DNA of 64,000 nt from NCBI RefSeq assembly GCF_000189555.1, contig NC_017276.1. One strand, written 5' to 3'. Position numbers and translations under genes: made by a program. Below the pieces are notes generated by a model. It saw only the letters and a list, made by a program, of their open reading frames with translations. It was not told the DNA's origin and ran no database searches. The stretch comes from Saccharolobus islandicus REY15A (GTDB taxonomy: Archaea; Thermoproteota; Thermoprotei_A; Sulfolobales; Sulfolobaceae). Numbering within the stretch: position 1 is the stretch's first letter; each line of letters begins with the position of its first letter. Below are positions 5,643-36,223 of the stretch, one piece after another.

Positions 5643-5924
5643 ATGAAAACCCTTTTAGTACCGCTAACAACTTTTATGATGCTTGACGTTATAACTACAG
5701 CACTGGGATTATTTAAGGGACTTATGGAAAGCAATCCAATAATTAACGCGTTATATTCATCACTACCATTTCCGATTTTCGTTGTGGTATTCCTTCTAAT
5801 AAAGGTTGGCGTGTTAGGTTTAATATACGTTCTTTATAAATATACTAAACTCGATTTAGTGCTCATTCTTGGGATAGGTATTTCTCTGATAGTCTTCATT
5901 AACAACGTCTTTCTCATCTCTTAA
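5643..5924 (+). CDS. Small membrane protein (DUF5658-like)
   Basis: LDVITT..GL...ESNPII motif with three hydrophobic segments. Confidence 0.6.
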   Translation: MKTLLVPLTTFMMLDVITTALGLFKGLMESNPIINALYSSLPFPIFVVVFLLIKVGVLGLIYVLYKYTKLDLVLILGIGISLIVFINNVFLIS

Positions 5925-6458
5925 TAAATTATTTACGTATTTCAGCAGTAAATAGACCGCAATTAGGTTCATCATTAAGAACATGATTATACCTACATAC
6001 TCTAACCCTTGGGGAGCATATACAGTAGTATAGAGTGATGGACTTATCATTAATATTAAGGAAAGTATACTATCTCCTATCATCCATAGGGCTAAAAGAA
6101 GAACCTTAAAGTTTCTGCTAAGTTCCTTTAGAGGAGAACCTATCATTAAACCTCCAATTACTAAAGAAACCTCCTCAATTAGTCGTACGGATAAGATCTC
6201 AGCTCCTAAGTTAAAAAAATATGGATAATGCCATAGGAAAGCAATTGAAGCACCAACTATTACAGCTATACTTTTGTCCACGATTTTCCTTCTTATGATA
6301 TAATATGAAAGAAGAATACCAGCCCCAAAAAGTGAATAATGAGCTAACATATAGGGTATTGGGTTAATGAACATATACTCCTCTGTAAATGGATTAACAG
6401 AAACCGCGATAAGAAAGATACAGAAAATAAGAACTGCTATAAAAAAATAATTATTCAC
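5856..6458 (-). CDS. DUF1404 family membrane protein (CtaG-like), directly downstream of soxM
   Basis: MLAHYSL, FLWHYP and WMIGDSILS motifs; GTG at 6458 preceded by AAGGTGA; 11 nt after the soxM stop. Confidence 0.7.
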   Translation of the reverse strand: MNNYFFIAVLIFCIFLIAVSVNPFTEEYMFINPIPYMLAHYSLFGAGILLSYYIIRRKIVDKSIAVIVGASIAFLWHYPYFFNLGAEILSVRLIEEVSLVIGGLMIGSPLKELSRNFKVLLLALWMIGDSILSLILMISPSLYTTVYAPQGLEYVGIIMFLMMNLIAVYLLLKYVNNLLRDEKDVVNEDYQRNTYPKNEH

Positions 6459-29178: not shown

Positions 29179-30098
29179 TTACTCACTAGCATCAAAGGGC
29201 CTATTATAATACAGCACAGCCCAAGTAATAACAGCCAATTTCCTTACACAAGCAGTAATCAACTTCCTACCCCTAAGCCTACCCTTATGCTCCTCATAAA
29301 AACGCTTGATAACAGGATTAACCTTGATGGCAGTAAAAGCTGCAAGATAGGAAGCCCTCCTCAAAACAGCATCACCCCTCTTAGAAATACCTCTCGATAC
29401 AACACTCTTACCACTAGACTCAACAACAAGACCACAATAAGCAACAAACCTCTTCTTATCACTAAAGCGCCTAACATCACCAACCCTAGCCAAGATAATA
29501 CAACCCAAGGTTTTACCAATACCCGGAATAGTGAAAATCAAACTATCCTTGGGGACTAGCTCTCTAAGCCTATCCTCAATCTTCCTACCCTCAAGCCTCT
29601 CCAACTCCTCCAAAAGAAACCTCAGACAACACTATACTATCCCCACCCCTCAAAACCTCCTCCAAATTCTTCCTAGACAGACTATCCCTATAGCCTAAAA
29701 GTACCAAATCCCTCCTCAACCTTAACCCTAACAATACTCCTAGTAACAAAATCCCACTGGCTAGTCAACTCCCTAGCATCACTTGTTGTAAACTCACTAC
29801 CCATACTTACAACTATTTCTGCTAGCATCATTCTTATCACTCTTCTTACCCCTAAAACCCTTGAACTTCTTGAGTATAAAGGGATTAATAATCCTAACAT
29901 CATACTCACCCATCAAGTACTTAGCGAGGTTAATGTGGTAAACTCCAGTACTTTCAATACCCACTTTGCAACCCTTAGGCAAGATCTTCCTTATCTCCTC
30001 ATAACCTCGCTTGTCATTAGTAAACTCGTAGTACTTGCCTTGAAAATACATAATTAATTTATCTTTTGATCATCTATTCCCGCAACTGGGGCCTCCAA
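29179..30098 (-). pseudogene. IS110 family transposase (ISC1190/ISC1229-like), multiply frameshifted
   Basis: TTG start MEAPVAGID with a 1-nt loss right after; GIESTGVYH; KSDKND; IPGIGKTL; ESSGKS; ACVRKLAV, spread over several frames. Confidence 0.88.
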
Positions 30099-30202
30099 AT
30101 TTACCCTTATTCGGGCTTTAAGCCCAACTTCCGGTTCGAATTGGAGGCAGGCCAAGCTAACAGCCGAGCTTTGAGCCCAAGGGAGTCAACGGCCTACACC
30201 CC

Positions 30203-30231
30203 AGTCAGATCTGTATTACTCAGATCTGACT
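30203..30231. other. Perfect hairpin in the non-coding leader of the IS110 element
   Basis: AGTCAGATCTG-TATTACT-CAGATCTGACT: 11-bp stem, 7-nt loop. Confidence 0.85.
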
Positions 30232-30593
30232 AATATGTTTTATATAAGAGGCGAAGCATGTGGTGCCTCTCAAGAGGTCAACGAGTAAAGAAGACTTCCG
30301 CTTGCTATTAATTATCCCGTTTTTACATGATAATATTGCCACAATATAAGAATATTCAGTTAAACTATTTTATTTACTTTTTGACTTTTTGGAATTATTT
30401 TCGGGTGACGAATTTGAAGTCTACGATTTGTATTTAAATCTTTTTCTTTAAGTTAGCACATATTAACATTTAAAAATATTAAAAAATGATTACTGATATT
30501 CCTCATGAAATATAAACATTATATAAGACTTACAATCATATACTAAAAAGTGTTAAGAGTAAAAAAAAAGCTAATTATCTATATAGAATAATA

Positions 30594-30600
30594 GAGGGAG
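30594..30600 (+). promoter_or_regulatory. Shine-Dalgarno-like site for the small Cys-rich ORF
   Basis: GAGGGAG 5 nt before ATG 30606; an A-run and TTATCTATATA (30575-30585) upstream could be BRE/TATA. Confidence 0.6.
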
Positions 30601-30605
30601 TAAAA

Positions 30606-30728
30606 ATGCAAAATGTCCCAATAGGCTTAGTTTTCCCAAAGTGGGTAGAACTTGGAAAGCTAAACGAGGGTGAGTTTCGCAGGAAAATTGCAGTATGTAT
30701 AAATGGTAATTGTGGGTGTGGAACTTAA
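30606..30728 (+). CDS. Putative RiPP precursor peptide, 40 aa (missed by the ORF track)
   Basis: MQNVPIGLVFPKWVELGKLNEGEFRRKIAVCINGNCGCGT*. All three Cys lie in the last 10 residues; RBS present; 21 nt upstream of the radical SAM gene on the same strand. Confidence 0.8.
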   Translation: MQNVPIGLVFPKWVELGKLNEGEFRRKIAVCINGNCGCGT

Positions 30729-30749
30729 TAAGATGATTAATGGAGGTGA

Positions 30750-31673
30750 ATGAAGATAAGTAATAGTTTTTTTCAAATTATTTTGATGTTATCAGAACAA
30801 TGCAATTTTAGGTGTTTTTATTGCTATGAAAGATTTTCTAATAATAAATTAAATGATTTGGATCAACGGATAATAAAATTTATTCATAAACTAGTAAATG
30901 ATTACGATATACATAGTATTGTTATGTCCTTTTTTGGCGGAGAACCCATGCTATATTATGATAAAATTATAAAAATTATGGAATATAATAATTCTATAGT
31001 AAATACATACGGTGATATGACTACAAATGGATATTTGCTTAGCATAGAAAAATTTGAAAAATTAGTAAAACTTAACGTAAGAGAGTATCAAATAACTTTT
31101 GACGGTTATAAGGATTATCATGATAAATTTAGAGTAACAGTAGGTAAAACCCCCACTTTTGATAGGATCTTCAAAAACATTATATCATATAAGAATGTAA
31201 AGAGTGATTTCAAAGTCAAAATAAGAATACACATACATAAAAATAATTCTTCATCAGTAAAAAAGCTTATAGACCTATTAGCAGATTATTTAGGTAATGA
31301 TAAAAGATACTCAATACTTATAAGATCCATATCGAAACTTGGAGGATCTAATGATGAGATGATATCGTTACCGAGTAGAGAAGAAGTAGAAGATGTACTA
31401 GCTTATGCTAAGTCAAAGGGACTCAGCATAGCTATGCCAATACATAACATCTGTTATGCATCTCTACCAAATTCAATAGTTATTAGGAGTGATGGAAAAA
31501 TATCTAAATGTACAGTAGATTTATACTCAGATAGAAATATAATAGGATATTTAGATAGTGATGGAAATCTAAGATTAGACCAAAATAAATTAAGATTTTG
31601 GACCAGAGGATTTTTTACGGGTGATTTAAAAGAGCTAAGATGCCCTCTTACTGGTGAGGACAATTATGATTGA
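30750..31673 (+). CDS. Radical SAM protein with Twitch/SPASM-like C-terminus (putative peptide maturase)
   Basis: CNFRCFYC (C18/C22/C25), FFGGEP, TTNG, QITFDG..HD..R; C-terminal CYASLPNSIVIRSDGKISKCT...RCP; RBS GGAGGTG. Confidence 0.92.
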   Translation: MKISNSFFQIILMLSEQCNFRCFYCYERFSNNKLNDLDQRIIKFIHKLVNDYDIHSIVMSFFGGEPMLYYDKIIKIMEYNNSIVNTYGDMTTNGYLLSIEKFEKLVKLNVREYQITFDGYKDYHDKFRVTVGKTPTFDRIFKNIISYKNVKSDFKVKIRIHIHKNNSSSVKKLIDLLADYLGNDKRYSILIRSISKLGGSNDEMISLPSREEVEDVLAYAKSKGLSIAMPIHNICYASLPNSIVIRSDGKISKCTVDLYSDRNIIGYLDSDGNLRLDQNKLRFWTRGFFTGDLKELRCPLTGEDNYD

Positions 31674-32169
31674 TGTTCATATAGTGTTTGGAGGAAATTT
31701 GGAAATAGGAATCCATAATATTGACAAAAAAGAAATATATGTGACTATAATTCCATTAATTCCCAATTTTTTCAAATTATTGGATTATAATTATAGAAGG
31801 GATTCTAAAGAAGTTTATTATAATTATAATTCTGAGAACAATTCTACATTAGAATTAATAAGAAAATATATAAATCAAAGTTTTAATATAGATGATCAAA
31901 TTGATAATATAATTGTTTCTGGTTCAGAAAGTTATTTCTTACAAAATCCTTTAGATATAAGTCTTACTATAATAAGGAAAATATTTGGAAATAACTACAA
32001 TAAAATTTATTATTATACACTATTAAATAAATTTATTGACTTTGATCAAATGGAATTAATTCAACTTTCTAATATTACCAATAAAGAAGTCTCAGTATAT
32101 TCATCTATTGTAGGTCCTCTGTTAAAAATAAGAAGTATGAGGCTTGAACATAAAGTGATCCCAGTATGA
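31666..32169 (+). CDS. Orphan hypothetical protein in the radical SAM operon
   Basis: ATG 31666 overlaps the rSAM stop and follows GGTGAGG; its stop overlaps the MFS start (ATGA); N/I/Y-rich, no recognised motif. Confidence 0.7.
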   Translation: MIDVHIVFGGNLEIGIHNIDKKEIYVTIIPLIPNFFKLLDYNYRRDSKEVYYNYNSENNSTLELIRKYINQSFNIDDQIDNIIVSGSESYFLQNPLDISLTIIRKIFGNNYNKIYYYTLLNKFIDFDQMELIQLSNITNKEVSVYSSIVGPLLKIRSMRLEHKVIPV

Positions 32170-33329
32170 AAATAGCTAAGGAGATAATTAATGTAGTATT
32201 TTTGCTTACTCTTCTTAATTTCGTAAATGCGTTTATAGGATATTATTTTGTAATAAACACATATTTAGTTTATAATAACTTGGTAATCTCAGCGTTAGTA
32301 TTGATTCTATTGAACGCCCCGAATGTCTTCTCAATACCTCTACCCTACATTTTTAAGAGATTAAAAAGTGTAAAAATTAATGTAATAATATTCCCTCTAC
32401 TGGCCTTCCTTGTAATCTTCACTTTAAGTCTAGACTTGACACCGTTAGAAGAGATCCTTCTAATAGCTTTATTCGATTTCCTAATTTTAACAGTAATCAG
32501 ATCATTAGGATATTATGCAAGAACTTTACTAGACAAATACGGCGAATTCATAGATTATAATTCTATTCAGCAAATTTTCTTTTTAGGTGCTTCTATCATC
32601 GCGTTAATAATAGCGGGGCTATTTAATACATACTTGCCCAGAACTTATCTACCGATTATAGGATTCCCTCTATTGATAGTAGTCCTTTTATCCATGACAT
32701 TAAATGACGTTAAGATAACCCTCTCTTCCACCAATTCCTTTAAGGTATGGGTAAACTATATAAAGAGTAACCGCATATTTATGTTCTTAGAAACACGGGT
32801 ATATCCAGTTATGGCCTTAGCTAATGCATCGACCGTTTTGTTTCTCAAACTTGTTTACGTAAACAAGGAGACATTCCCAGAATACATTACTGTAGTCTTA
32901 GTAGTGAGTATATTAGCTCAGGCAATTGGTGCCATTATTGCCCTAAAGTGGAAGTCGGAGACTACGAGAAAATTCTTGCTCTTATCACTCCCTGCCATAT
33001 CAATTGAATATGTATTCCCCTTCATCCGTGGCGATTTAATAACTATTTCAGTTTTAACTTTCTTACAGTCAGTGCTTGTGGCTTATGTTTTCATCCATAT
33101 TAATTCTATTTATCAATATATTATTAATAAAGATGTTTATGTAAATGTCACAGTCACACAAGCAGTTTTAACACAAGTCTCAATATTTATAGTGAGCACT
33201 TTAGTATCGGTAATAGCTACTGTCGTGGGGATCACATATACTTATATAGGTAATGCGACAATAATGCTACTAATAGTGCTATTTACAATATTCTCCAATA
33301 CCATAAAAGATATAAAGGCAAAAGATTAA
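32166..33329 (+). CDS. MFS-type transporter, probable exporter of the rSAM operon
   Basis: 387 aa with about 11-12 hydrophobic segments; translationally coupled to the preceding gene. Confidence 0.8.
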   Translation: MKIAKEIINVVFLLTLLNFVNAFIGYYFVINTYLVYNNLVISALVLILLNAPNVFSIPLPYIFKRLKSVKINVIIFPLLAFLVIFTLSLDLTPLEEILLIALFDFLILTVIRSLGYYARTLLDKYGEFIDYNSIQQIFFLGASIIALIIAGLFNTYLPRTYLPIIGFPLLIVVLLSMTLNDVKITLSSTNSFKVWVNYIKSNRIFMFLETRVYPVMALANASTVLFLKLVYVNKETFPEYITVVLVVSILAQAIGAIIALKWKSETTRKFLLLSLPAISIEYVFPFIRGDLITISVLTFLQSVLVAYVFIHINSIYQYIINKDVYVNVTVTQAVLTQVSIFIVSTLVSVIATVVGITYTYIGNATIMLLIVLFTIFSNTIKDIKAKD

Positions 33330-33626: not shown

Positions 33627-34064
33627 TTACCAAATAATTTCTATCCCTAACTTCCTCGCAACTAGAGTGAGATCTTTATCTCCAGTTATTATTCCTACAC
33701 CTAATTTCTTAGCTAAATGAATTATTGTAGAGTCAACTATGCTTAACCTTCTTCCATTCATTTCCTTTGCCAAGATGTCATCACCCTCCTTCTTAATTTT
33801 AGCACTGTCAATAAAATCGTCAGAAGTCAACTCATTAACCTTGAAATAAGTGAAAAGAAATGTTCTGGCTTCATCTATGGACTTAAGGGAGGGAATTCTA
33901 CTCCTAAGCCAATGCACAATAAATTCAAAAACTACGGTAGAAGGGATTACCCCCTCATATAGACCGCTCCTTATACCAGACATAACCTCCTCTCCCCTCT
34001 TCGTTAACTCACCATATGCCATTGCCAAGATAGCATAAGTATCAACTATTATGCTCTTTTCCAA
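33627..34064 (-). CDS. vapC: PIN-domain toxin
   Basis: IIVDTYA, E in STVVFEF, LSIVD, TGDKDL acidic tetrad. Confidence 0.9.
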   Translation of the reverse strand: MEKSIIVDTYAILAMAYGELTKRGEEVMSGIRSGLYEGVIPSTVVFEFIVHWLRSRIPSLKSIDEARTFLFTYFKVNELTSDDFIDSAKIKKEGDDILAKEMNGRRLSIVDSTIIHLAKKLGVGIITGDKDLTLVARKLGIEIIW

Positions 34065-34282
34065 AATTCCTCTTCCTCCTCATCTAATTCCCTTTCAGCA
34101 TCTTCTGAAGACCCCTTACAACATTTCCACACCTTATCCCATAGATCTATTTTCTCAATAATTATCTTACCTCCCTCTACTCTCATCTTAACAATATCGC
34201 CCTCATTAATTCTGACCTCTTCTCTTATCGCCTTAGGAACTACTATAATACCCTTCTTATTAACCTTTACCCTAACTTCCAT
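34049..34282 (-). CDS. vapB: AbrB/MazE-type antitoxin
   Basis: VKVNKKGIIVVPKAIR swapped-hairpin motif, acidic tail, overlaps the vapC start. Confidence 0.88.
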   Translation of the reverse strand: MEVRVKVNKKGIIVVPKAIREEVRINEGDIVKMRVEGGKIIIEKIDLWDKVWKCCKGSSEDAERELDEEEEEFWKRA

Positions 34283-34415: not shown

Positions 34416-35000
34416 ATGCTAAGACCTAAAGAAGTATGCCAACGCTTAGGAATATCCTATGCAACGCTTAGAGAATACGTAAAGAAGGGTTATATCAAAC
34501 CAGTAATACTACAGAGCGGGAAGTGGAGGTTCAGAGAAGAGGACATAGAAAAGCTGATGGGGATTGTTAGAAAGAGGAAAGTGATCCTTTATGCTAGGGT
34601 ATCATCAAACACACAAAAAGACGACTTGGTAAACCAGGTAAAATATTTACAAGAGCAAGTAAAGGACTACGACCAAGTAATAACTGACGTAGGTTCTGGG
34701 TTAAACATGAAAAGGAAGGGATTCCTCAAGTTGTTGAGGATGATACTAAACAACGAAGTATCAAAAGTAGTCATAGCTTACCCAGACAGACTGGTTAGGT
34801 TTGGTTTCGAGATAATAGAAGAAGTATGCAAAGCACACAACTGCGAAATAGTAGTTCTTAATAGGGAGGACAAAACACCAGAACAAGAGTTGATAGAGGA
34901 TCTGATCTCAATCCTAGTATCATTCAGTGAAAAACTCTACGGAATGAGGAGTCACAAATACGAAAAGGTGAAGAAGTGTGTCGAAGAACTTAAGAATTAA
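34416..35000 (+). CDS. tnpA: IS607 serine recombinase (TnpA)
   Basis: N-terminal MerR-like HTH, YARVSS catalytic motif, DVGSG, DRLVRFG. Confidence 0.92.
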   Translation: MLRPKEVCQRLGISYATLREYVKKGYIKPVILQSGKWRFREEDIEKLMGIVRKRKVILYARVSSNTQKDDLVNQVKYLQEQVKDYDQVITDVGSGLNMKRKGFLKLLRMILNNEVSKVVIAYPDRLVRFGFEIIEEVCKAHNCEIVVLNREDKTPEQELIEDLISILVSFSEKLYGMRSHKYEKVKKCVEELKN

Positions 35001-35180
35001 ATCATTCAAACCAGAGGAGGAGTACATTTACCTAACTTACTCCATAAAGAACAACAAGAGGGAGGAGACGAAAATACTACTGGAGAACTACAGAGTCCTA
35101 CTACAGAAAGCATTAGACTGGTTATGGGAGAGGGTGAAGGTAGAGAGAAAAGAAGTGAAGAAGGGTAAGAAAGTACTCAC
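34978..35180 (+). pseudogene. tnpB: 5' fragment of tnpB, cut by the IS630 insertion
   Basis: Overlaps the tnpA end; about 68 codons before the TA target; no RuvC or zinc-finger region remains after the insertion. Confidence 0.75.
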
Positions 35181-35182
35181 TA

Positions 35183-36223
35183 GTATTTCCGAAAAGTTTA
35201 TAGCCTAGTATTACCAAATTGAATTATGCAAGATTTAGTTAAAGCTTACGAGGAAGAGAAGGACGCGAGGATTAAGGAGAGGATTCTTGCGGTGAAGCTG
35301 CATGTGGTTGACGGTAAATCGGAGAAAGAAGTTTCGAAAATGCTGAACAAGGGTTATTCCACAATAAAATTGTGGGTTGGCAAGTACAAGAAAGAAGGTC
35401 TTGACGGACTAAGAGACAAACCTAGATCAGGAAGACCGAGAAAAGCTGAGAAAGAAAAAATAAAACAAATACTAGAAGACCAGCCTCAAAAATACGGAAT
35501 ACAAGAAGAGTACTGGACAATGAGAACACTAAAAATAGCACTACTACAACAAGGAATAGAGTACAAGAAATCCAGGCTATACGAGATAGTTCACGAACTA
35601 GGATACAATCTAGTAAAACCTAGGCCTACTAACGTTCAAGCAAGAAAGGACATGTGGGAAGACTTTAAAAAAAATAAAGAAGTTGGAAGAAGAGGCTCTC
35701 TTCTTTCCAGACGAGAGTAGGGCAGTAATTAGCACGTCGATCCGGAAGGTTTTAAGATTGGTAGTAAGCCCGTAATGCACGTCAATATAGGTTTTTCTTC
35801 GATCTATGTCATTCTTGCTGTAAACGCTTGGACTGGTGAAGTAGTTGTTTCTCTTGTTAGGAGGCCTAATTCTGAGTCTGTTAAGTACTTCTTGAGGTAC
35901 TTTAAGAGACGTTTTGGTAGTGGAAGGGTCTACATGGTTATGGATAATTATTCTCCTCACAAGACTAAGGGTACGCTTGAGGTTTGTCGTAGGAAGGGCA
36001 TTCATCCCATATTTACTCCTCCTTATTCGCCCGAGCTTAACATGGCCGAGGCAGTCTTCAAGTCCCTCAAGGAATACATGAGCAATAAAATATTTTATAC
36101 GATAGAAGACGTTAAAAACTGTATTAAGCAGTTCTTTGAGGAAAATAAGTATAAGTTTAATCTTAATGCAATAACATACTTAGAATTAGATAAAACTGAA
36201 CGCTAAGAACTTCCCGGAAATAC
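35183..36223 (+). mobile_element. IS630 family IS (ISC1048-like)
   Basis: 16-bp IR GTATTTCCGAAAAGTT / AACTTCCCGGAAATAC (2 mismatches), TA on both sides (35181-35182, 36224-36225), 1041 bp. Confidence 0.9.
35226..36206 (+). pseudogene. IS630 transposase with a -1 frameshift site and an extra, probably inactivating, frameshift
   Basis: HTH ORF (GRPRK); slippery TTTAAAAAAAAT near 35664; the -1 frame carries DES but stops near 35775; MDNYSPHK and YSPELNMAE are in another frame. Confidence 0.8.

Follow-up and report, generated by a model that had tools for sequence, protein, structure and literature searches.

A radical SAM enzyme of Saccharolobus islandicus REY15A as a candidate peptide maturase with a single predicted auxiliary cluster and no RiPP recognition element

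INTRODUCTION

Can a radical S-adenosylmethionine (SAM) enzyme form a carbon–sulfur bond in a ribosomal peptide with neither a dedicated recognition element nor a second auxiliary iron–sulfur (Fe-S) cluster? The question is raised by a gene for a 307-amino-acid (aa) protein in a stretch of 64,000 nucleotides (nt) of the Saccharolobus islandicus REY15A genome (contig NC_017276.1), referred to below as the window. To our knowledge, the thioether synthases studied so far (AlbA, SkfB, CteB, PapB, NxxcB and QmpB) have a recognition element for peptides that are synthesized ribosomally and modified after translation (RiPPs), known as the RRE, and, in most cases, two auxiliary clusters. What the RRE and the auxiliary clusters do is a matter of continuing debate (PMC6231123). 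With a natural clade that has neither the RRE nor the second cluster and would act on the same kind of substrate, the minimal needs of C–S bond formation and of leader recognition could be tested.

A first-pass annotation of the window, made from the letters alone, had described the protein as a minimal peptide-modifying radical SAM enzyme, either independent of an RRE or reliant on a neighbouring protein. We analysed the gene, its homologues and its surroundings computationally. With a probability of about 0.6, we consider the protein to be a RiPP maturase of a minimal radical SAM clade, with a 40-residue peptide encoded directly upstream as its substrate and with a mechanism that yields Asn–Cys thioethers.

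RESULTS

The enzyme gene and its cysteines

The gene and the motifs on which its assignment depends are the following.

30750..31673, + strand: radical SAM enzyme gene, 307 aa; radical SAM core and a predicted Twitch-like C-terminal domain, no RRE
30742..30749, + strand: Shine-Dalgarno-like GGAGGTGA, abutting the ATG at 30750
30801..30824, + strand: radical SAM motif C18-x3-C22-x2-C25, predicted ligands of the SAM-binding [4Fe-4S] cluster
31452..31511, + strand: C235-x13-G249-x4-C254, first half of the SPASM/Twitch motif (Cx9-15Gx4C), around a beta-hairpin
31641..31646, + strand: C298-P299, a lone invariant Cys beyond the C-terminal helices and the third predicted ligand of the auxiliary cluster

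The open reading frame (ORF), as listed, opens with ATG and has the N-terminal sequence MKISNSFFQIILMLSEQCNFRCFYCYERF. Its translation agrees with what had been reported at first pass: 307 residues, CxxxCxxC at residues 18–25, and only three other cysteines, C235 (NICYASLPN), C254 (ISKCTV) and C298 (LRCP). This CX3CX2C is the sole instance among window ORFs of more than 150 aa. Only 17 residues precede C18, which leaves no room for an RRE in the form of a PqqD-like element of ~80–100 aa ahead of the radical SAM motif.

In the public annotation the enzyme starts at M13 (295 aa; codon at 30786). On direct reading of the sequence, no Shine-Dalgarno-like motif was found before codon 13, and a start at M13 would remove residues 7–13, the first barrel strand in the AlphaFold2 (AF2) model. 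Because a Shine-Dalgarno-like motif abuts the ATG at 30750 and residues 7–13 form this strand, we regard 30750 as the better start, and the annotated one as probably mis-called. The closest homologue, with 78% identity, is from Acidianus brierleyi. Against this ortholog the ratio of nonsynonymous to synonymous substitution rates (dN/dS) is 0.22, and the gene is under purifying selection.

Profile and structure comparisons of the enzyme

The first-pass annotation had proposed profile searches with the Pfam models PF04055 and PF13186. The enzyme scored 65.4 bits against Radical_SAM (PF04055), above the cut-off of 29.5, and had no Pfam match to SPASM (PF13186) at an expectation value (E) of 1 or below. 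The CX3CX2C motif, an invariant SAM-binding GGEP motif (G63-G64-E65-P66) and the fold, as modelled by AF2 and compared with Foldseek, all place it in the radical SAM superfamily. The NCBIfam comparison covered the 25 best matches, and the best of these were RiPP maturases: TIGR04463 ‘rSAM_vs_C_rich’ (E 1.2e-34, 120 bits, cut-off 525), CefB (NF038107; E 7.2e-33, 114 bits, cut-off 600), the geopeptide maturase and PapB. The NCBIfam family cut-offs were reached neither by the enzyme nor by one bacterial homologue. Alignments with these maturases follow the radical SAM core and the first half of SPASM colinearly and are confined to profile positions ~79–371 of ~440. Because of this span, we conclude that the enzyme has neither the N-terminal RRE nor the second half of SPASM (CX2CX5CX3C...C): about 78 N-terminal residues and the last ~70 residues of the TIGR04463 and CefB profiles have no counterpart here.

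An AF2 model built on a 76-homologue alignment had a predicted local distance difference test score (pLDDT) of 92.7 and a predicted template modelling (TM) score (pTM) of 0.90. When this model was compared with the PDB using Foldseek, CteB was the top match (E 1e-13, TM 0.69), followed by the anaerobic sulfatase-maturating enzyme (anSME; E 9e-13), SkfB, ChlB and EpeE (E 8e-11). A family profile searched against PDB sequences matched CteB at 7e-30. A best structural match to a cofactor-biosynthesis enzyme or to an anSME with a sulfatase target, along with an absence of peptide docking or activity, had been named at first pass as speaking against a peptide maturase; CteB came first and no sulfatase gene lies nearby.

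In Twitch domains such as those of BtrN and SkfB, the cluster ligands are found on either side of the hairpin and past helix alpha2' (PMC6231123). The three cysteines of the enzyme occupy these positions in the secondary structure of the AF2 model, where C235 and C254 enclose hairpin strands 242–246 and 250–252 and C298 follows helices 278–290 and 293–297; the Twitch-like three-Cys arrangement proposed earlier is thus borne out. The seven-Cys SPASM motif CX9-15GX4C-gap-CX2CX5CX3C-gap-C, which serves two auxiliary clusters, is not present. In MoaA and CteB, an auxiliary cluster held by three protein cysteines has an open iron, and in CteB this site on Aux I binds the substrate Cys (PMC6231123). 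The model suggests that the C-terminal domain of the enzyme is likewise Twitch-like, with one predicted auxiliary cluster and an open site.

A clade of minimal enzymes

The short architecture recurs among the homologues. In 119 of them the CX3CX2C motif starts at a median residue of 28; Cx9-15Gx4C was found in 112 of the 119, and 95 of those 112 have exactly one later Cys. Across the 76-sequence alignment C235, G249, K253, C254 and C298-P299 are invariant, and C18, C22 and C25 nearly so. An exhaustive HMMER search returned 760 representatives of 50%-identity clusters at E<=1e-30, and at least 140 of the best 150 have the short form (275–375 aa, with alignment from within the first ~45 residues). 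Metagenome relatives fall into a ‘minimal’ class, with the radical SAM motif at ~20–45 and one later Cys, and an ‘RRE+SPASM’ class, with the motif at ~90–140 and five later Cys. A maximum-likelihood tree splits 44 minimal sequences (plus one long-branch exception) from 30 RRE+SPASM relatives with support 92/98, so that the minimal proteins stand on their own branch, and four archaeal sequences form a subclade (support 100/96). By these sequence comparisons, the short RRE-less architecture is a trait of a whole clade of several hundred proteins. The minimal architecture described at first pass is therefore real, but it is not peculiar to the Sulfolobus gene, and it has a precedent in EpeE (PMC13012085).

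In the literature on Sulfolobus RiPPs, RRE-less Twitch maturases and NxxC motifs, we located no account of this clade, and the searchable literature held no report tying it to NxxC peptides or giving a Sulfolobales example. The enzyme matched no family-specific Pfam model, and no curated NCBIfam model reached its cut-off. For this reason the clade is probably under-called as RiPP clusters by genome mining that depends on the RRE or on SPASM.

Some family members were found on prophage-like or viral contigs. On a Bacillus toyonensis contig, the enzyme gene is bordered by a phage integrase on one side and an AimR (arbitrium) module on the other, and a ...TNGNCNC... peptide is encoded downstream. 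Six IMG/VR contigs carry minimal enzymes; Asn/Cys-containing small ORFs lie alongside in five of the six, and these are NxxC-rich in four.

A candidate precursor peptide and its association with the enzyme family

A short ORF upstream of the enzyme gene is the candidate substrate.

30606..30728, + strand: precursor peptide gene, 40 aa, MQNVPIGLVFPKWVELGKLNEGEFRRKIAVCINGNCGCGT; called as a gene in the public record
30696..30725, + strand: precursor core CINGNCGCGT, predicted modification site
30577..30601, + strand: A/T-rich upstream region with TATA-like ATCTATATAG (30577–30586) and GAGGGAG (30594–30600), read directly

The peptide ORF ends 21 nt upstream of the enzyme ORF. The C terminus of the 40-mer reads AVCINGNCGCGT (also given as ...RRKIAVCINGNCGCGT); residues 1–30 roughly make up the leader and C31–T40 the core, which holds two overlapping NxxC motifs, N33..C36 and N35..C38. 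The precursor dN/dS is 0.43, and an orthologous 38-aa ORF in A. brierleyi ends ...AVCLDNCDCV. Sulfolobus TATA boxes usually lie ~25 nt upstream of the transcription start, and the sequence at 30577..30601 is a possible archaeal promoter and/or ribosome-binding site. The window holds no second copy of the precursor and no second radical SAM gene. Neither NCBIfam nor Pfam has a family for the 40-mer or for six related precursor candidates.

Minimal enzymes also have short Cys-containing ORFs beside them in A. brierleyi, Sulfuracidifex metallicus, a Micrarchaeota metagenome-assembled genome, Delftia, Vibrio, Bacillus and a deltaproteobacterium, and on many metagenome contigs. A leader motif, hydrophobic-x-hydrophobic-(D/N)-x-x-G-x-hydrophobic-x-hydrophobic, is common to the bacterial precursors. 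Of 100 small ORFs adjacent on the same strand, 29 have this motif together with Cys, compared with 9 of the 623 other small ORFs in these loci (Fisher p ~1e-19). In a count made independently of the leader-motif selection, Asn stands at position −3 of 61 of the 131 Cys (47%) in 42 related precursors from 34 loci, compared with 17 +/- 3.7, and at most 30, in 2,000 within-core shuffles. A frequent C-terminal N-x-N-C-x-C comprises two overlapping NxxC units (NGNCGC in the window, NGNCNC in Bacillus). The family thus has what a thioether synthase would be expected to have beside it, an adjacent precursor with Cys donors and conserved acceptor positions. The RRE+SPASM sister clade, with relatives from metagenomes, also adjoins peptides with NxxC cores (e.g. 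...TNGNCVC and ...NNLNCGCS), and their leaders are of another sort, either acidic or with GG at the end (e.g. LEDFSILELEDRLEF). Since these leaders are unlike those of the minimal clade, the type of leader changes with the loss of the RRE.

By analogy with known systems, the clade enzymes most likely cross-link the short Asn/Cys-rich peptides encoded next to them. RiPP maturases as the best NCBIfam matches, CteB as the top structure and the recurrence of Cys peptides beside family members all uphold the earlier assignment to the peptide maturases, and we take the enzyme to be a real, probably functional one, with no RRE and with one predicted auxiliary cluster.

Several loci have two or three paralogous precursors for one minimal radical SAM enzyme, with cores of 3–6 NxxC units. 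Just past the stop of the A. brierleyi precursor gene there is a tandem duplication of ~15 nt (ATAATTGTGACTGTG twice; ~5880–5925 of locus L006), and a metagenome variant of this precursor ends ...CDCG instead of ...CDCV. In Vibrio cyclitrophicus (L010, 4571–5011), the enzyme gene is adjacent to that of a 146-aa protein with seven CPDxD/CPSD repeats, whose Cys-x3-Asp spacing is reminiscent of PapB/freyrasin substrates; the locus lies among SNIPE, PIN, group II intron reverse transcriptase and GAPS4-like genes, a defence-island-like setting. In Delftia acidovorans (L011, 3339–11020), a full RiPP-type cluster surrounds the minimal enzyme, with an HlyD-like protein, an 80-aa GG-leader peptide with a Pro8 tract, a JmjC/cupin protein, an S41 peptidase, a C39-ABC exporter and OEP. 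Pfam families found beside minimal enzymes include C39-peptidase ABC exporters (5 loci), MacB/FtsX, HlyD and OEP.

Comparison with characterised enzymes

CteB, the SCIFF/thermocellin thioether synthase (PDB 5WGG/5WHY), is the top match of the enzyme in both sequence and fold. It is longer, at 450 aa, and has in addition an RRE at the N terminus and a second auxiliary cluster; its identity to the enzyme is 17–20%. In SkfB, BtrN and MoaA a truncated SPASM domain carries just one auxiliary cluster, as is predicted for the enzyme; however, SkfB has an RRE and a CXC pair after alpha2', where the enzyme has just one Cys after the helix, and the substrates of BtrN and MoaA are small molecules.

The N-x-x-C spacing of the NxxcB and QmpB substrates is also that of the precursors of this family. 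NxxcB joins Asn C-beta to Cys S, with the thiol of the substrate proposed to chelate an auxiliary cluster, and QmpB makes an Asn C-alpha to Cys S link (PMC9389541, PMC11851443). No NxxcB model stood among the 25 NCBIfam matches considered. Judged by domain description, the enzyme is not a member of the NxxcB family, which is characterised by a two-cluster SPASM domain: NxxcB has a SPASM domain (PMC11851443), and the second half of such a domain is missing here. NxxcB is further set apart by its Streptococcus host and shp/rgg context, whereas the present gene is archaeal and has no such context.

Proposed mechanism

By analogy with NxxcB and QmpB, the enzyme would form Asn-x-x-Cys thioethers. 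The cluster bound by C18, C22 and C25 would cleave SAM, and the resulting 5'-deoxyadenosyl radical would take a hydrogen from Asn (N33 and/or N35) of the core CINGNCGCGT. C235, C254 and C298 would hold one auxiliary Fe-S cluster in the Twitch-like domain with one iron left free, and this iron would bind, as thiolate, the Cys that follows the Asn by three positions (C36, C38). Attack of the carbon radical on the sulfur would then give one or two small Asn-x-x-Cys thioether rings, and the electron would leave through the same auxiliary cluster, which would serve as thiol binder and electron acceptor at once. The leader would be recognised by the catalytic domain itself, or its recognition would not be needed, and the product would be exported by the membrane protein encoded downstream. 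The analysis shows how the gene is built, its conservation throughout the family, its fold, the pairing of the family with NxxC peptides in genomes and purifying selection; we infer the cluster stoichiometry, the open coordination site, the thioether chemistry, its regiochemistry (C-alpha or C-beta) and the export step from these comparisons. On this analogy, the enzyme may work like the known radical thioether synthases while lacking two of the features that define SPASM/RRE maturases.

Evidence against the assignment and alternative explanations

The weighing of this assignment involves two downstream genes and a segment that varies between strains.

31654..32169, + strand: 171-aa ORF, identified by sequence comparison as an in-frame internal-deletion derivative of a 395-aa Sulfolobales orphan
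32166..33329, + strand: 387-aa polytopic membrane protein, candidate exporter; no Pfam or NCBIfam match
30269..32456, no strand assigned: strain-variable 2.2-kb segment (precursor, radical SAM gene, 171-aa ORF and codons 1–97 of the membrane gene), delimited with blastn and tblastn

Several observations weigh against a working thioether pathway at this locus. The core of A. brierleyi (CLDNCDCV) has a single NxxC, that of a Sulfuracidifex metallicus paralogue (KCGNFIC) also one, and that of the Micrarchaeota peptide (GGCGPSDC) none; because these other archaeal cores hold one or no NxxC, Asn may not be an obligatory acceptor in the archaeal subclade. The Sulfolobales leaders match the bacterial leader motif loosely, the auxiliary cluster may have a fourth, non-Cys ligand, and no leader peptidase gene is encoded in the archaeal locus. 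The adjacent orphan gene in the window carries a 222-codon deletion. S. islandicus CP001403 and CP001404 and two metagenome contigs lack the segment 30269–32456, and their flanks are 92–99% identical. As the membrane gene is truncated there, we take this to be a deletion in the other strains and not an insertion in the window. S. tepidarius AP018929.1 (L094, 3742–4005) has a degenerate copy of the locus, in which residues ~3–16 of the radical SAM protein are joined near residues 281–307 and the peptide ORF lacks the Cys core (it ends ...KFANCIIIIIPK, then stop); the downstream genes for a 389-aa orphan and a 388-aa membrane protein are intact. By these comparisons, the locus is accessory and dispensable.

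The enzyme and the peptide could be rightly paired and the chemistry be of another kind, such as EpeE-like epimerisation, anSME-like oxidation of Cys C-beta, a C–C or C–O cross-link or a C-terminal modification. We consider this unlikely. EpeE (YydG) has ~320 aa, a radical SAM motif near its N terminus, no RRE and one auxiliary cluster, housed in an extended Twitch (‘T-SPASM’) domain, and its substrate is a short ribosomal peptide (PMC13012085), so that the concept of a single-cluster, RRE-less peptide enzyme is not new. Both anSME and EpeE are structural neighbours of the enzyme, similar SPASM/Twitch sequences catalyse many different reactions (PMC6231123), and, as noted, NxxC is absent from some archaeal cores. 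However, EpeE uses Cys223 and Asp210 for hydrogen return and requires the spare Cys223 as hydrogen donor (PMC13012085), whereas the three extra cysteines of the enzyme are all invariant predicted ligands. Because no catalytic Cys is left over beyond the cluster ligands, an epimerase mechanism of the EpeE type is disfavoured. EpeE acts on Val and Ile, in contrast to the Asn/Cys-rich core found here, and was not detected when PDB sequences were searched with the enzyme or the family profile. Thioether formation is favoured over these other reactions by the conservation of the cores, which rests on Cys and on Asn at −3 as in known Asn–Cys thioether substrates, and by CteB, the top match, being a thioether synthase.

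It is also conceivable, although we regard it as improbable, that the gene is an evolutionary relic in a decaying locus, with an intact enzyme and no product. The absence of the segment from four other S. islandicus genomes or contigs, the reduction of the S. tepidarius enzyme to stubs with loss of the precursor core, and the in-frame deletion in the neighbouring orphan gene would all suit such decay. Insertion sequence (IS) fragments flank the locus, which is the GC minimum of the window (29% at 30001–32000, compared with ~36% for the window). Against decay, the enzyme ORF is full length with every family-invariant residue and a dN/dS of 0.22, the precursor is intact with a conserved core, and both a Shine-Dalgarno-like motif and a TATA-like element are present. 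The orphan gene is found in no other family context and so is not required by the family.

A very improbable explanation is that the enzyme needs the neighbouring 171-aa protein, or another factor in trans, as a surrogate recognition element. In-trans RREs are known (PqqD, MftB, StsC, WprC), the 171-aa ORF overlaps the stop of the radical SAM gene, which suggests translational coupling, and its fragments have dN/dS values of 0.23–0.31. Yet this ORF corresponds to residues 1–130 and 352–395 of the 395-aa A. brierleyi protein, and homologues of the orphan were found only in A. brierleyi and S. tepidarius, not beside the S. metallicus, Micrarchaeota or bacterial enzymes. Since no other family context contains the orphan, it cannot serve the family generally in place of an RRE, and the ORF in the window is probably vestigial; the reliance on a neighbouring protein considered at first pass finds no backing here. 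The 171-aa ORF had no match in Pfam, NCBIfam or PADLOC, and no window neighbour had a PqqD-like match in Pfam. Among 143 neighbouring ORFs of 42 loci, a PqqD-like family was not one of the 25 most frequent Pfam families (families seen in a single neighbour are not in this list).

That the enzyme is not a peptide maturase at all but a cofactor-biosynthesis, sulfatase-maturating or viperin-like radical SAM enzyme beside a coincidental small ORF has next to no probability: its matches to the MoaA, NirJ, anSME and prokaryotic viperin models are weak, with bit scores far below the cut-offs for anSME (TIGR03942; 62/349), MoaA (56/325) and viperin (56/180), and although MoaA too has a Twitch cluster with three Cys, Pfam revealed neither sulfatase nor cofactor genes among the window neighbours of the enzyme, the association with peptides is statistically strong over 34 loci, and leader-cleaving exporters are present in the bacterial loci. 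A reading as a defence system was rejected as well; PADLOC gave only generic viperin-core matches, the pVip match covering residues 12–175.

Implications of a minimal thioether synthase

On a wider reading, which we regard as less likely than not, the enzymes of a large clade, comprising at least 140 50%-identity clusters, would use the catalytic domain alone to recognise a hairpin-like leader with the motif given above. A single cluster with an open site would serve for binding the Cys thiol as well as for accepting the electron, and Aux II and the RRE would be dispensable for radical C–S bond formation. The protein would then be a 35-kDa, naturally thermostable peptide macrocyclase, and with this predicted activity it could serve as a small, heat-stable catalyst for cyclising peptides. 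A thermoacidophile origin, considered at first pass, is supported by the CP002425.1 record, on which the exact enzyme protein is encoded, and by the identity of the flanks to S. islandicus genomes. On the same wider reading, this would be the first RiPP pathway of the Sulfolobales (Thermoproteota) and the type example of a bacterial–archaeal clade of thioether synthases that have lost the RRE and the second auxiliary cluster. S. islandicus REY15A has established genetics, and the natural deletion strains of the species could be used as controls.

Neighbouring genes and the surrounding region

The enzyme, 171-aa and 387-aa ORFs are chained by overlapping stops and starts. An AF2 model of the 395-aa orphan, based on a 4-sequence alignment, had a pLDDT of 39.8, too poor for a fold search; its N-terminal beta-beta-beta-alpha-beta-alpha-beta pattern only hints at an RNase H/ASKHA-like fold.

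The 387-aa membrane protein is 57% identical to its counterpart beside the A. brierleyi enzyme, and a 99%-identical protein comes from a source named Sulfolobus islandicus Y.G.57.14. One source names its Stygiolobus homologue an ‘MFS transporter’. In Sulfolobus sp. S-194 and Stygiolobus caldivivus, a homologue occurs without a radical SAM gene (L099, 3266–4483; L100, 4063–4482); the genes upstream of it are different ones, for a 405-aa HTH_20/DUF7347 protein and for a 139-aa APH-like_N protein. As the membrane protein occurs without the enzyme, it is not specific to the peptide pathway and its link to it is weak. BLASTP found no similarity between the window protein and an MFS-like 387-aa protein beside the S. 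metallicus homologue, and so lends no support to a shared exporter family.

Further features of the surrounding region are the following.

29179..30051, − strand: broken IS110-family transposase, two ORFs (Transposase_20 1.2e-22, DEDD_Tnp_IS110 6.7e-07)
33627..34282, − strand: VapBC-type toxin–antitoxin pair (PIN and AbrB/MazE-like), syntenic with the locus in A. brierleyi
34416–36206, + strand: gene for an IS607-type MerR-resolvase, and two ORFs of a split IS630-type transposase

In the other S. islandicus strains, the start of the deletion adjoins the IS110 remnant.

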